Virus record (IMG/VR): IMGVR_UViG_3300024502_000010
Span: 124,001-188,000 of that record
Length of the DNA: 64,000 nt
Strand: one strand, 5' to 3'
The stretch's first letter is position 1; every line of letters starts with the position of its first letter. Below the pieces are notes generated by a model. It saw only the letters and a list, made by a program, of their open reading frames with translations, searched no databases and was not told the DNA's origin. Below, one piece after another: positions 1,255 to 62,958 of the stretch. Both the position numbers and the translations under genes were made by a program.

Positions 1255-1310
1255 AGCGTTCCTTCAGTCGGCGTTTCCGTTCGCTATTTGCGAATAGCGA
1301 ATGAACGAAT
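1255..1310 (-). ncRNA. glutamine riboswitch aptamer (glnA motif), second of a tandem pair
   Basis: CGUUCA-[P2 UUCGCUAUU/AAUAGCGAA]-CGGAAACGCCGACUGAAGGAACGC; P1 is CGUUC/GAACG; DUF4278 gene downstream. Confidence 0.75.
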
Positions 1311-1562
1311 TGCGTTCCGCGTCGGCTTACTTCCGTCCTATTAGGTTTTAGCACTTTACTATGAAATCCTTTCGGAGTTCTAATAACAATCGGTCCTCTA
1401 TCTTTTGAATTACTACATCGTCGTTTTTAACGATGTCCATTAGTTCCATCGCGGTGTCGCAAGAAACTGCAACCTGTTGGATGCTAGATGCTTGTGGCGC
1501 TGAAACGAAGAGGAAAGGAACCCATGCTAAAAGCAAGAGTGCTTTAGTCATAGGATGAACGG
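1311..1562 (-). ncRNA. split glutamine riboswitch aptamer (first of the pair) with an ORF in its P2 loop
   Basis: 5' half CCGUUCAUCCUAU (1550-1562) and 3' half AUAGGACGGAAGUAAGCCGACGCGGAACGC (1312-1341); P2 UCCUAU/AUAGGA is a perfect 6-bp stem. Confidence 0.65.
1348..1551 (-). CDS. 67-aa hypothetical protein with signal-peptide-like N-terminus and two Cys
   Basis: ORF track; hydrophobic N-terminus MTKALLLLAWVPFLFVSA; no SD sequence. Confidence 0.7.
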   Translation of the reverse strand: MTKALLLLAWVPFLFVSAPQASSIQQVAVSCDTAMELMDIVKNDDVVIQKIEDRLLLELRKDFIVKC

Positions 1563-8886: not shown

Positions 8887-8992
8887 AGTAAGACCATCAG
8901 GGAAATGGTGGAGATACTATGCTCCCCGCACCCTTAGCGGGGATATGAGAGACGTAATTTATACACCCATAGGTCTCGGTTATCGGGTGTCT
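8887..8992 (-). ncRNA. PhotoRC-II-like structured psbA leader
   Basis: GAGAC...GUCUC, CACCC...GGGUG, CCCCGC...GCGGGG and ACCAU...AUGGU pairings in the psbA 5' UTR; family name from recollection, not a search. Confidence 0.6.
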
Positions 8993-9040
8993 AACAATGT
9001 TAAGGGAACGTTGCGTTCCGTAACATTTGTTTACCTATTT

Positions 9041-40589: not shown

Positions 40590-40596
40590 TGTAACT

Positions 40597-40692
40597 CAGG
40601 CTCGCCACTTGCCCTTTGACTGGAGGCAAGAAACCAGGCGGGAGAGAGTCCCATCCGCACCAATTGCCCTTGAGAGAGGCAATAAACTCATA
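40597..40692 (-). ncRNA. wcaG-type RNA: tandem pseudoknot modules each ending in UGGYG
   Basis: UGAG/CUCA with AUUGCC/GGCAAU then UGGUG; CUGG/CCAG with CUUGCC/GGCAAG then UGGCG; upstream of an NDP-sugar epimerase. Confidence 0.7.
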
Positions 40693-44953: not shown

Positions 44954-45038
44954 CGGAAAGGGTGGGATTCGAACCCACGGATGCTTTCACATCGCTAGTT
45001 TTCAAGACTAGAGCCTTCAACCACTCGACCACCTTTCC
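44954..45038 (-). tRNA. tRNA-Ser(UGA)
   Basis: CUAGU-CUUGAAA-ACUAG; long variable arm; G73. Confidence 0.95.
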
Positions 45039-45048
45039 AGTGGGAGGT

Positions 45049-45300
45049 TCAACGAACCTCAAAATCCAAACGCTTTACTTTGCGTTGGCGTCTTGCCTCT
45101 TGCCAGGCAATATCTTGTGAAGTCAGAACATTTGATTTTTGTTCTTTCTGAATAGAGTTTAACATAACAATACGAGATAAGTCAAGTGCTGAAATCTTAT
45201 CTCCACGAATTGTTGCCATATTAGGACAACCACAGGTCACTGTTTTTGAATGATGTCCTGTTATTTCTCTATTACAATCTTTGCATCTTATTGAAATCAT
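45049..45300 (-). CDS. small Cys-rich (zinc-ribbon-like) protein
   Basis: CKDC...CGCPN. Confidence 0.7.
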   Translation of the reverse strand: MISIRCKDCNREITGHHSKTVTCGCPNMATIRGDKISALDLSRIVMLNSIQKEQKSNVLTSQDIAWQEARRQRKVKRLDFEVR

Positions 45301-45315
45301 TATTCTTCATCCTAA

Positions 45316-45750
45316 TCATTGCAGGTGTGCTCTCAACTGCCAAACAAACTTACCATGAGATTCCATCAAATCTTGAACTAAATTTGCTGTAGCATATGAC
45401 TTTTGATTTTCAGACTCTTCCGAAATTTCTCCCATCAATTCACAAAACTTGGTATTGTTATCAAGAAGTTCTTGAAGCATTTCTTTTGCTCCGGTTGAAC
45501 TTGCTGCCTCTTTGATTTGAGTTACCTCAAGCATTCTTGAGAGAGAACTGAGAGGTTTTACATTCAGATAACGCATATGTTCTGAGAGACGATCAATCTC
45601 TTCAAACATAGTCTCATACTGACCACCAAAGAGTTGATGTAGTTGAGTGAAATCTTCACCTACAACATTCCAGTGAAATGCCCAAGTTTTATGGAATAAA
45701 ACAAAAAGCGATGACTGTGCATCACTCAAGAGTTTATAAAGTTTTTCCAT
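45316..45750 (-). CDS. dps: Dps/ferritin-like DNA protection protein
   Basis: HWNVVG..F..LH.LF..QY......D..SE and H.K..WQL motifs. Confidence 0.92.
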   Translation of the reverse strand: MEKLYKLLSDAQSSLFVLFHKTWAFHWNVVGEDFTQLHQLFGGQYETMFEEIDRLSEHMRYLNVKPLSSLSRMLEVTQIKEAASSTGAKEMLQELLDNNTKFCELMGEISEESENQKSYATANLVQDLMESHGKFVWQLRAHLQ

Positions 45751-45778
45751 TATACTCTTTTTGAAATATTTATGCAAA

Positions 45779-45795
45779 TGGGAGCAGAGGGATTC
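45779..45795 (-). pseudogene. orphan tRNA 3' end (T-arm 3' strand, acceptor 3' strand and A73)
   Basis: GAAT-CCCTC-TGCTCCC-A directly after the HNH gene. Confidence 0.6.
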
Positions 45796-45801
45796 ATTTT
45801 T

Positions 45802-46338
45802 TTACTTATTCATACAAAACTTAGGATGTTGCTTGTCCTTACTGTAACGTCCACCGTTACTCTTTTGGGGTGGTAAAGTTTTTTGTGCGTGGCAGTTGGG
45901 ACAGACCACTTGTAGATTTTCAGGGGCGTGGTTGAAAGGGTCGTCGTCTATGTGGTCCACCTCAAGGCAGGTTCGTCCGGTATGAATGTTTGTTCCAGAC
46001 CAACCACAAAGGGAACACTTACCCCCACTCGCTTCTAATAAGTAAGCACGAACACCGCTGGGAACATAACCCTGCCCTGTATGGTTCAGTTCTCCTACTT
46101 TCCACTTATCTATTGTCCATTGTCTCTTGGCTGCAGCACTACACTTGTTAGAACAGAACTTGCCAGTAGAACTCTTTTTCTTATAGTCAAACTCTACACT
46201 GCAGTAATTACAGATGGCGGTGTCCCAACCAGTTCTTTTCCTCTTAGGAGACTTCTTATTATTATAGGTTACAGAACACGAACGGGAGCAGAACTTAGGT
46301 TTATCGTTCTCACACCCGCAGTTTAAACAAGTAGTCAT
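45802..46338 (-). CDS. HNH homing endonuclease
   Basis: CSLC...LEVDHID.....N...NLQVVCPNCH; N-terminal FCSRSC / FCSNKC zinc repeats. Confidence 0.9.
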   Translation of the reverse strand: MTTCLNCGCENDKPKFCSRSCSVTYNNKKSPKRKRTGWDTAICNYCSVEFDYKKKSSTGKFCSNKCSAAAKRQWTIDKWKVGELNHTGQGYVPSGVRAYLLEASGGKCSLCGWSGTNIHTGRTCLEVDHIDDDPFNHAPENLQVVCPNCHAQKTLPPQKSNGGRYSKDKQHPKFCMNK

Positions 46339-46392
46339 AATAGAACCGAATACCTTTTATTATTTATAACACAAGTATTCGTTTTAGTAAAG

Positions 46393-46464
46393 TGCCCGAA
46401 GAGGGACTTGAACCCCCAACATTTTCGGTGTAAACGAAACGCTCTGCCTTTGAGCTATTCGGGC
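46393..46464 (-). tRNA. tRNA-Val(UAC)
   Basis: GCCCGAA/UUCGGGC; UUUCG-UUUACAC-CGAAA. Confidence 0.92.
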
Positions 46465-46466
46465 AA

Positions 46467-46540
46467 GCTCCCATCGTAGGTACTGCCCCTACCAATCTCT
46501 GATTAACAGTCAGGCCCGTTCGCTTGCTCGGTCGATGGGA
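46467..46540 (-). tRNA. atypical tRNA-Asn(GUU)
   Basis: UCCCAUC/GAUGGGA, G73; CUGA-CUGUUAA-UCAG; T-loop GGCAGUA; D-loop lacks GG. Confidence 0.7.
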
Positions 46541-46544
46541 ATAA

Positions 46545-46614
46545 AGGAAGTTACTGGACTTACACCAGTTCAAAGGGCATTGTCTGCTTGTCTCGATTCT
46601 TTGACTTAACTTCC
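46545..46614 (-). ncRNA. tRNA-like element with degenerate anticodon arm
   Basis: GGAAGUU/AACUUCC; D-like GUC/GAC; T-like ACUGG-UGUAAGU-CCAGU. Confidence 0.55.
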
Positions 46615-46654
46615 TTTGGCGTCTTTCTATGCTATCTGCATAACGACTACCAAG

Positions 46655-46726
46655 AGCGAAAGACGAGATTCGAACTCGCAACAACCTGCTTGGAAGGCAG
46701 GGACTCTACCGTTGAGTTACTTTCGC
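46655..46726 (-). tRNA. tRNA-Gly(UCC)
   Basis: CCUGC-CUUCCAA-GCAGG; U73. Confidence 0.95.
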
Positions 46727-46765
46727 AATGAGACAATCATAAACTATTTAAGTTTGATTGTCAAG

Positions 46766-46848
46766 TGCTCCAGAGAAGATTTGAACTTCCACGCTTTTTA
46801 AGGCGGCGGATTCTAAGTCCGCTGTGTCTACCGTTCCACCACTGAAGC
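46766..46848 (-). tRNA. tRNA-Leu(UAG)
   Basis: GCGGA-CUUAGAA-UCCGC; long variable arm; A73. Confidence 0.93.
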
Positions 46849-46931
46849 AGATGGAGTAAGCGTAATATACCTCATAAGGATATAACAGAGGCTTACCCTC
46901 TATCACTTTTATGTATGGAGATAAACTCCAA

Positions 46932-47004
46932 CAGGCACAGAGGGACTCGAACCCCCAATCGTCATCTTAGAAGGATGTTGCATTATCCATTATGCTATGT
47001 GCCC
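46932..47004 (-). tRNA. tRNA-Arg(UCU)
   Basis: CAUC-CUUCUAA-GAUG; UUCGAGU T-loop. Confidence 0.93.
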
Positions 47005-47009
47005 ATAAA

Positions 47010-47060
47010 GTAGGTTCCTATCGCCGCCATTCCTGAACCTACCGAAGGGGAATGCCGCAG
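47010..47060 (-). ncRNA. candidate H-type pseudoknot RNA in a tRNA spacer
   Basis: P1 CUGC..CAUUCC/GGAAUG-GCGG; P2 GUAGGUUC/GAACCUAC. Confidence 0.55.
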
Positions 47061-47109
47061 TTGATTTCTCAACTCTTATATTGTACCAGTTGTTTGGAAA
47101 CTGGTCAAG

Positions 47110-47181
47110 TGGGAAATGGTGGATTTGAACCACCGACCTCTGCGTTATCAGCACATTGCTCTACCACTGAGCTAATCTCCC
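47110..47181 (-). tRNA. tRNA-Ile(GAU)
   Basis: UGUG-CUGAUAA-CGCA; canonical D and T arms. Confidence 0.93.
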
Positions 47182-47273
47182 TGGCGGAAGTGGTTGGATT
47201 CGAACCAACGGATGCACTTAGGTACATCGGCGGATTAGCAATCCACTGCATTAGACCTCTCTGCCACACTTCC
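47182..47273 (-). tRNA. tRNA-Ser(GCU), CCA encoded
   Basis: GUGGA-UUGCUAA-UCCGC; long variable arm. Confidence 0.95.
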
Positions 47274-47275
47274 AA

Positions 47276-47347
47276 TAGTCCCTACGGGAATCGAACCCGT
47301 GTCTACACCGTGAAAGGGTGGTGTCCTAACCGCTAGACGAAGGGACC
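47276..47347 (-). tRNA. tRNA-Glu(UUC)
   Basis: CACC-CUUUCAC-GGUG. Confidence 0.95.
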
Positions 47348-47350
47348 AGG

Positions 47351-47432
47351 TGGGCAGGGAGGGATTTGAACCCCCGTAGGCAGAGCCAGCGGATTTACAG
47401 TCCGCCTCCATTAACCACTCGGACACCTACCC
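47351..47432 (-). tRNA. tRNA-Tyr(GUA)
   Basis: GCGGA-CUGUAAA-UCCGC; long variable arm. Confidence 0.95.
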
Positions 47433-62886: not shown

Positions 62887-62958
62887 TGGAGTGTAAGGAA
62901 ATCGAATCCTTATTGCTGGAATGCAAATCCAGAGTAATAACCGTTATACGAACACCCC
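62887..62958 (-). tRNA. tRNA-Ala(UGC)
   Basis: GGGGUGU/ACACUCC with G3-U70; CUGGA-UUUGCAU-UCCAG. Confidence 0.9.

Follow-up and report, generated by a model that had tools for sequence, protein, structure and literature searches.

The analysed window is a 64,000-nucleotide stretch of a T4-like cyanophage genome (IMG/VR record IMGVR_UViG_3300024502_000010, positions 124,001 to 188,000), in which we found on the minus strand a tandem of glutamine-type aptamers upstream of a small gene. The first aptamer is interrupted by a 67-codon ORF (1551-1348), while the second (1307-1257) is unsplit. The two aptamers are followed by a Shine-Dalgarno (SD) sequence AAGGAG (1238-1233) and a 45-aa gene with two YRG motifs (AUG at 1224-1222, 1238-1087 including the SD), a motif described in the supplement of PMC2864571. 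This gene is DUF4278-like, with a match to DUF4278 at E 0.0024 (18.6 bits, below the Pfam cut-off of 25.3) and matched phrog_5049 at E 6.6e-9. An overlapping ORF of 32-33 aa (1090-989), whose GTG/ATG start overlaps the stop of the preceding gene, showed no family match. An intrinsic terminator with a 10-bp stem followed by a U-run (985-960) ends the small operon.

Upstream of the first aptamer we identified a likely promoter (1600-1563) with a TATAAT box at 1577-1572 and a weak -35-like element, TTCCTA (1600-1595). A consensus promoter scan did not list this site because of its weak -35, whereas relatives (S-PM2 and DSL-LC03) have TTGACT-N17-TATAAT. An inverted repeat AGAGG/CCUCU (1581-1577 and 1567-1563) flanks the -10 box and covaries between loci. 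About 52 nt upstream of the likely transcription start, which is inferred, lies a GTA-N8-TAC sequence (1623-1610) matching the NtcA-box consensus. The same motif occurred within 120 nt upstream in 65 of 85 distinct relatives, mostly at a fixed 58-62 nt from CGTTCA, but in only 1 of 85 in a control region. Binding by NtcA is inferred.

A small gene within the first aptamer

The 5' half of aptamer 1 consists of CGUUC (P1 5' strand, 1561-1557), A1556 and UCCUAU (P2 5' strand, 1555-1550). The start codon of the 67-aa ORF lies at 1551-1549, so that its A and U are located inside P2, and the ORF ends with UAA at 1350-1348. Six nt after the stop follow AUAGGA (P2 3' strand, 1341-1336), CGGAAGUAAGCCGACGCG (1335-1318) and GAACG (P1 3' strand, 1317-1313), with CGGAAGUAAGCCGACGCGGAACG (1335-1313) representing the 3' core together with the P1 3' strand. 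P1 comprises 5/5 pairs and P2 6/6 Watson-Crick pairs across 208 nt, and the inner stem lies directly after CGUUCA and directly before ACGGAA as in type-1 glutamine (glnA) aptamers. The 20 nt before the AUG are pyrimidine-rich and hold no GGAG, GAGG or AGGA. An earlier note had read this locus as a tandem glutamine riboswitch whose first aptamer encloses a protein-coding gene without SD and with the AU of its AUG inside P2, and every element it named is present.

We compared both aptamers with the Rfam model of the glnA RNA motif (RF01739). [quoted passage not shown] In a permissive scan of 601 nt, aptamer 2, which has a 9-bp P2 hairpin (1301-1280), aligned over model positions 1-53 of 53 with 34.7 bits (E 8.8e-6), which is 0.3 bits under the gathering score of 35, and all consensus blocks including GAAGGAACG are present. 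The split aptamer 1 cannot be scored by this model and gave no hit. However, phage S-CREM1 carries the aptamer 1 of the window with a GAAA loop in place of the ORF, and this natural loop-deleted homologue, whose 3' half is identical, matched RF01739 below threshold at 29.5 bits (E 2.6e-5). The conserved core ACGGAAGUA is represented in the window by A-CGGAAGUA (1336-1328), which in the identical S-CREM1 3' half aligns to the model consensus. Instead of the conserved GAAGGAACG at the 3' end, aptamer 1 has GCGGAACG and lacks the GAAG before GGAACG, as is typical of first aptamers in these phage tandems. We consider aptamer 1 a divergent relative and not a formal member of this family.

The nested gene encodes a protein with a signal-peptide-like hydrophobic N-terminus, two Cys (31 and 67) and two predicted helices (AlphaFold2 model of a low-confidence helical hairpin, pLDDT 69.5). 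Twelve distinct relatives with 69-79% identity were all nested in the same way. No Pfam or PHROG match was obtained, and a tblastn search of isolate phage genomes gave no match to the protein, while megablast of the locus against isolate phages found only the aptamer region. Within the ORF, a 36-nt stretch (1447-1412) containing a perfect hairpin (CAUCGU...ACGAUG) is invariant at the nucleotide level in the ORF family of the window. A further local hairpin at the 5' end (CCUAUG...CAUGGG, 1554-1521) also buries the AUG and competes with P2. This hairpin is part of the minimum-free-energy and centroid folds and is conserved in the ORF family of the window, with compensatory changes in two cases (L075 and L123). 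In the window's own sequence it out-competes P2, with a predicted pairing probability of 0.02 for P2 as compared to 0.89 for P1.

Conservation of split aptamers in related phages

Loci were retrieved using only the 3' core of aptamer 1, and all 31 long cases with enough upstream DNA showed CGTTCA 199-233 nt upstream, next to the start of an ORF, which is more than expected by chance. In about two thirds of 123 related cyanomyovirus loci sampled, a small gene is nested in this way. Among 215 aptamer units the hairpins were either 11-28 nt (119 units) or 138-246 nt (96 units) in length, with none between. Of the 96 long units 93 hold an ORF of 49-69 aa, while the other 3 were scanner artefacts. 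Either aptamer, or both, can be split. The AUG is located 8-12 nt after the C of CGUUCA and lies inside P2 in 94/94 cases, and the stop falls at one of a few fixed spots in or just before the 3' core. An SD-like motif preceded only 3 of 95 nested ORFs, but 52 of 53 downstream genes. The inserts showed coding signatures, with differences by codon position of 32/19/48% and all length differences being multiples of 3.

The long-range stem covaries across the ORF. In 95 distinct split units, chosen without any pairing requirement, the P2 pairs were 96-97% paired with 3-4 pair types at two positions, as compared to 47-51% with shuffled partners, while the P1 5' strand was invariant in 95 split units. 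RNAalifold found P1 and P2 as the only long-range consensus helices, with compensatory changes, in addition to one 2-bp local stem in the 3' core. This was the case for 44 aptamer-2 units as well as for 25 aptamer-1 units including the window. The nearest-neighbour model gave P2 a probability of 0.69 with native inserts and of 0.12 with inserts after mononucleotide shuffling. P2 does not vary within the window's own ORF family, so the covariation comes from the other ORF groups. In the ORF family of the window the P2 3' strand and the core lie outside the coding sequence and are nevertheless invariant. In the two other ORF groups the 3' core is also coding (DAKAD*, GRK*), which confounds its conservation, although the same core also occurs in unsplit aptamers.

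The nested proteins of the two other ORF groups matched phrog_504 and phrog_6471 (E 1e-12 to 4e-30), which are cyanophage proteins of unknown function annotated as hypothetical in Syn19, S-SSM4, S-SSM6b, Syn2 and P-RSM6. The protein of the window showed no PHROG hit at E <= 0.01, and hhalign of its ORF family gave a probability of only 4% against the phrog_6471-type group and 25% against the phrog_504-type group, whereas those two groups matched each other at 84%. A single family of nested proteins was therefore not supported for the ORF family of the window, despite the similar size, a hydrophobic N-terminus, two Cys about 36 residues apart and nesting in the same loop.

Possible regulatory function of the nested arrangement

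With its P1, the position of its inner hairpin, its core, its tandem layout and its YRG/DUF4278 downstream gene, the element resembles known type-1 glutamine riboswitches, but it differs in that the hairpin loop is 138-246 nt long and encodes a protein, with the start codon in the stem and the stop in or next to the core. We found no description of this layout in the literature that could be searched, and a 2022 survey of tandem riboswitches counted arrangements only when no ORF intervened (PMC9481103) and so would not have counted these. In the uORFs of Mycobacterium tuberculosis B12 riboswitch expression platforms (PMC11260477), and apparently also in the Salmonella mgtA and mgtCBR leaders (mgtL, mgtM, mgtP), translation of an ORF within a sensing leader RNA competes with alternative RNA structures. 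Those ORFs, however, are short leader peptides placed between or after the sensing helices, whereas here a conserved protein gene of 49-69 aa lies inside the aptamer's own helix. Group I and group II introns such as the phage T4 td intron likely offer a parallel for a structured RNA closing around an ORF in a peripheral loop, but these are self-splicing mobile elements whose ORF promotes their spread. Here we saw no sign of mobility functions, the RNA is of a ligand-sensing type, and the start and stop of the ORF are built into its helices.

Mutual exclusion of aptamer folding and ORF translation, which the earlier note had offered as an inference, follows from the geometry and remains an inference. 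A folded aptamer occludes the SD-less initiation site, and conversely a ribosome that initiates, elongates or terminates keeps the aptamer apart. Consistent with this, predicted accessibility of the start region in the two other ORF groups fell from 0.46-0.58 in nascent RNA to 0.25-0.28 in the completed unit. We favour, with moderate confidence, a reciprocal switch in which high glutamine locks aptamer 1 and shuts off the nested gene while, as shown for Synechocystis gifB (PMC6212724), glutamine-bound aptamers favour translation of the downstream DUF4278/YRG gene, and in which low glutamine gives the opposite pattern. Ribosome traffic would add a self-reinforcing, commitment-like step. Glutamine binding by the split aptamer, translation of the ORF and the direction of regulation are inferred here. 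The P2 of the window is moreover 6 bp long and AU-rich, and aptamer-1-type cores score below the Rfam threshold even when unsplit. If P2 forms without ligand, as hairpin stems do in free minimal aptamers, occlusion of the start codon might not depend on glutamine.

Other explanations appeared unlikely. Control might run mainly the other way, with translation of the nested ORF as the input, reporting ribosome or charged-tRNA supply or simply early coupled translation, and gating the downstream gene in the manner of a leader peptide. In 75 of 95 units the stop codon lies inside the aptamer core, so that every translating ribosome must melt it, and the 5' strands are transcribed 140-230 nt before their partners, which leaves time for ribosome loading, with a predicted accessibility of the start region in nascent RNA of 0.46-0.58. 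However, the ORFs encode conserved proteins with two invariant Cys and predicted helices and not short sensor peptides with runs of one codon, and this model adds to the one above rather than excluding it. It is also doubtful, but conceivable, that the P1/P2 helix works without ligand, either as a 5'-3' clamp that stabilises or processes the small mRNA (an RNase site or protection of the ends) or as a fixed translational brake, with the core retained only for coding or historical reasons. The deviating aptamer-1-type cores, the coding nature of the core in two ORF groups and the pairing of the AUG in both the local hairpin and P2 in the ORF family of the window, which looks like constant occlusion, would agree with this. 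On the other hand, the core is conserved in unsplit aptamers without ORF and in the ORF family of the window where it is non-coding, and the elements always sit in tandem upstream of a DUF4278/YRG gene, the known glutamine-riboswitch context (PMC6212724). Also unlikely is a gene cassette that landed in a tolerant loop of a dead aptamer 1, with only aptamer 2 still sensing glutamine and no regulatory coupling, because although the patchy distribution with all four short/long combinations, the identical flanks of the window and S-CREM1, the ORF family of the window being barely related to the two other nested ORF groups (the loop may have been colonised more than once) and the weak P2 predicted for the window would fit, a dead aptamer would decay, whereas P1, P2 and core are kept in 95 distinct split units with compensatory P2 changes, native inserts favour P2 closure, the AUG always lies inside P2, the stop falls at fixed core positions and the SD is systematically absent.

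Riboswitches are normally described, and searched for, as compact non-coding leader elements, and current annotation misses the split elements, as Rfam reported no glutamine-riboswitch match in Syn19 or the other loci where both aptamers are split. It is possible, though tentative, that cyanomyoviruses use a previously unrecognised architecture in which one short transcript would give two opposite outputs according to host glutamine, namely the nested Cys-pair protein at low and the IF17-like protein at high glutamine, with ribosome occupancy making the choice self-reinforcing, and that the split form would be the majority form of the phage glutamine riboswitch, invisible to current covariance-model searches. 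The layout offers a simple natural design for reciprocal control of two genes by one metabolite and a direct way to study the competition between ribosomes and long-range RNA folding. It further ties a family of about 275 sequence clusters of unknown small phage proteins to host nitrogen status, alongside an NtcA-like box upstream, which is relevant to how cyanophages handle nitrogen-limited hosts in the ocean.

Organisation of the locus and its match to the glutamine riboswitch family

The window belongs to a T4-like cyanomyovirus and carries the typical features of this group, namely wcaG RNA (102.9 bits), PhotoRC-II RNA (84.1 bits) and ten tRNA genes, nine of them in one cluster (40594-40691, 8909-9002, 44954-47432 and 62887-62958, all minus strand). 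The locus is syntenic with Synechococcus phage S-PM2. On the minus strand, speD (1956-1630) is followed by a GTA-N8-TAC box (1623-1610), a likely promoter with TATAAT at 1577-1572, CGUUC-A-UCCUAU (1561-1550), a 67-codon ORF (AUG 1551-1549, UAA 1350-1348), AUAGGA (1341-1336) with CGGAAGUAAGCCGACGCGGAACG (1335-1313), and a second, compact aptamer (1307-1257). Downstream of these we found a Shine-Dalgarno (SD) sequence AAGGAG (1238-1233) and a 45-aa gene with two YRG motifs (1224-1087), an overlapping 32-33 aa ORF (1090-989), an intrinsic terminator (985-960) and a further small ORF (922-743), followed by thyX. The 32-33 aa ORF overlaps the stop of the DUF4278-like gene (GTGATG), is preceded by AAGGAGGGG, ends just before the terminator and showed no family match. 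All elements listed in the earlier note, which had described a first aptamer enclosing an ORF downstream of a TATAAT box and an intact second aptamer, are present at the positions it gave. P2 (UCCUAU with AUAGGA) forms 6/6 Watson-Crick pairs and P1 forms 5/5.

The GTA-N8-TAC motif upstream of aptamer 1 matches the NtcA-box consensus and was also located in two related loci, L125 (about 1385-1400) and L124 (about 1223-1240). It is present within 120 nt in 65 of 85 distinct upstream regions, against 1 of 85 in a control region, and sits mostly 58-62 nt, or in 11 cases 19 nt, before CGTTCA. Although this spacing does not fit the classical -41.5 activator position, the motif suggests 2-oxoglutarate/NtcA control of the same operon. 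The TATAAT box is further flanked by an inverted repeat (1581-1563, minus strand; columns about 19-38 of the alignment A4) which covaries between loci (AGAGG/CCUCU, GGGG/CCCC, GGAG/CUCC, GGUC/GACC, UGUGUU/AACACA) and whose loop is usually -10-like. If this is an RNA hairpin, the transcript starts further upstream than the earlier note assumed.

Aptamer 2 aligned to the whole Rfam glutamine model RF01739 at 34.7 bits (gathering score 35, E 8.8e-6) and therefore only appeared in a permissive scan. Aptamer 1 cannot be scored because of the insert, but a natural equivalent of its loop deletion is found in phage S-CREM1, which has CGUUCAUCC-GAAA-GGACGGAAGUAAGCCGACGCGGAACG, with flanks identical to those of the window and a tetraloop where the ORF sits. 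This sequence matched RF01739 over the full model at 29.5 bits, E 2.6e-5. The score is below threshold mainly because first aptamers of these phage tandems lack the GAAG that precedes GGAACG, and we therefore treat aptamer 1 as a divergent relative of the type-1 glutamine aptamer and not as a formal member.

Occurrence of split aptamers in related phages

S-PM2 and S-CREM1 have the same locus with short hairpins in both aptamers, whereas phage DSL-LC03 has aptamer 1 intact and aptamer 2 split by a 51-codon ORF that starts at CGUUCA-UCUAUG. The distance from CGTTCA to the 3' core of aptamer 1 was 19-37 nt in 91 loci and 199-233 nt in 30 loci plus the window, with nothing between. A generic scan of all loci found 215 aptamer units, of which 119 have hairpins of 11-28 nt and 96 have hairpins of 138-246 nt. 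Among the latter, 93 hold an ORF of 49-69 aa and the other three are artefacts of the scan. The AUG lies 8-12 nt after the C of CGUUCA, that is, inside the P2 5' strand, and the stop falls on the UGA or UAA of GACU(G/A)AAGG (63 cases), on the UAA of AAGUAAG (12 cases), or 2-13 nt before the core (18 cases, which include the window's type).

Tandems occurred in every combination, with 40 short-long, 24 short-short, 13 long-long and 10 long-short (the window's type) loci as well as one short-long-short triple. Of the 123 loci, 80 have at least one split aptamer. In locus L080 (6552-6780) a phrog_6471-type (aptamer-1-type) protein with its aptamer-1-type core occupies the second position of a tandem, and the units appear to be shuffled or duplicated as modules. 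The short hairpin of S-PM2 aptamer 1 (locus L002, 2490-2530), UCCCAUAUGGGA, contains an AUG in frame with the UAA of the core and encodes MGRK*, the same last three residues as the phrog_6471-type nested proteins (...IGRK*). Only 6 of 89 short hairpins contain any AUG. The S-PM2 hairpin may be a relic of an ORF deletion. Isolates Syn19, S-SSM4, S-SSM6b, Syn2 and P-RSM6 carry nested genes that are annotated as hypothetical proteins, and where both aptamers are split, as in Syn19, Rfam reports no glutamine-riboswitch match.

We also screened one genome per bacterial and archaeal species with a sequence pattern and obtained seven matches. Three were chance hits without ORFs and four were genuine, all on marine MAG contigs. 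No cyanobacterial isolate genome matched, although the pattern covered only the commonest AUG offset and insert lengths of 125-155 nt. The contigs carrying cyanophage-type tandem aptamers with nested ORFs (L128-L131) were binned as 'Euryarchaeota archaeon TMED129', a Verrucomicrobiales MAG and an uncultured-bacterium MAG. The two TMED129 contigs (L130 and L131) are clearly cyanomyovirus DNA and are thus mis-binned.

Covariation of the long-range helices and coding signature of the inserts

Selection on the long-range helices was examined in 95 distinct units chosen by ORF and 3' core only, with no pairing requirement. The first five P2 pairs are 96-97% paired. At P2 position 3 we observed U-A 29, C-G 29, A-U 26 and U-G 6, while shuffled partners were paired in 47% (maximum of 1000 shuffles, 61%), and at position 4 we observed A-U 55, U-A 24, U-G 9 and C-G 3, against 51% with shuffled partners (maximum of 1000 shuffles, 67%). 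RNAalifold, which was given no structure, returned P1 and P2 as the only long-range consensus helices, plus one 2-bp local stem in the 3' core. This held for 44 aptamer-2 units (pairs CG 24 / UA 13 / UG 7 and CG 20 / AU 13 / UA 8 / UG 3, none broken) and also for 25 aptamer-1 units that include the window. In some units P2 extends to 14-20 bp, pairing the first codons with the last. In a nearest-neighbour model, P2 had a mean probability of 0.69 with native inserts and 0.12 with shuffled inserts.

The inserts are genes. Pairwise differences fall 32/19/48% on codon positions 1/2/3, all length variation is in multiples of three, and in the largest stop class 60 of 60 units are in the same frame. 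The encoded proteins share a short hydrophobic N-terminus and two invariant Cys about 35-40 residues apart, and we sorted them into three groups: group A (the window's type), group B (other ORFs nested in aptamer 1, matching phrog_6471) and group C (ORFs nested in aptamer 2, matching phrog_504). Groups B and C are homologous (hhalign probability 84%, E 7e-6). Group A has 12 distinct relatives, all nested in the same way, and matched no PHROG, Pfam family or isolate genome. It is only weakly similar to B and C (probability 4% and 25%), so it is either a very distant member or an independent occupant of the same loop. A profile of all three groups found 275 clusters at E <= 0.001 among 1.84 billion representatives, all of them small proteins. 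Many database versions of the nested proteins (e.g. representatives P0005, P0007 and P0015) carry about 24-30 extra N-terminal residues, and gene callers have probably chosen an upstream start that reads through the preceding aptamer. The AlphaFold2 model (pLDDT 69.5) shows two predicted helices, 31-43 and 49-63, bracketed by the two Cys, and the N-terminus of the window protein (MTKALLLLAWVPFLFVSAPQA) looks, in our reading, like a signal peptide.

Some complications are specific to the window. The P2 of group A is invariant and thus offers no covariation of its own, and the group has a conserved local hairpin (CCUAUG...CAUGGG, 1554-1521), with compensatory changes in two relatives, that sequesters both the AUG and the P2 5' strand. 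In the window this hairpin wins in silico, with a P2 probability of 0.02 and a P1 probability of 0.89, while across group A the P2 probability ranges from 0.02 to 0.95. The hairpin may represent a third state of the switch, or a 5' stabiliser. Group A also has a 36-nt stretch inside the nested ORF (about 1447-1412, minus strand) that is invariant at the nucleotide level across 12 relatives that differ elsewhere and forms a perfect hairpin (CAUCGU-UAAAAA-ACGAUG), which implies an extra RNA-level constraint. On the other side, the P2 3' strand and core of group A are non-coding yet invariant, while the 3' end of the ORF varies, and this points to an RNA-level constraint as well.

Known systems and a possible mode of regulation

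We found no description of an ORF inside a glutamine aptamer, or inside any riboswitch aptamer, in Weinberg et al. 2010 and its supplement, Klähn et al. 2018, the S-CREM1 paper, the methylophage paper, the 2022 survey of tandem riboswitches or by full-text searches, although an earlier remark in Ames & Breaker 2011 or Ren et al. 2015 cannot be excluded. The 2022 survey counted 157 glutamine doublets but accepted tandems only when no ORF intervened. We consider the closest analogues to be leader ORFs within sensing leaders (the mgtA/mgtL type, and mycobacterial B12 uORFs) and intron ORFs looped out of ribozyme hairpins.

Two features of the nested ORFs are systematic. They lack a Shine-Dalgarno sequence, with an SD-like 4-mer in 3 of 95 against 52 of 53 downstream genes on the same transcripts, and their start region is formed by the P1 and P2 5' strands. 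For groups B and C, the predicted accessibility of positions -12 to +13 around the AUG falls from 0.46-0.58 in the first 110 nt of nascent RNA to 0.25-0.28 in the completed unit. A folded aptamer should therefore block initiation. Conversely, the stop lies inside the core in 75 of 95 units and 6 nt before the P2 3' strand in the window, and a translating or terminating ribosome must therefore hold the aptamer open.

Type-1 glutamine riboswitches enhance translation of the downstream gifB gene when glutamine binds (PMC6212724). The most economical model is thus reciprocal, in that glutamine would lock the aptamer, the nested gene would go off and the DUF4278/YRG gene would go on, while low glutamine would give the reverse and ribosome occupancy would reinforce whichever state is reached first. 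Ligand binding by split aptamers and translation of the ORF are inferred here, as is the sign of regulation, and whereas we consider it very likely that the architecture is a functional unit, this direction of control is about as likely as not. The layout itself is real and conserved. It sets these aptamers apart from those described so far for this known riboswitch class in the sources examined, is common in cyanomyoviruses and comes with a clear, testable mechanism.
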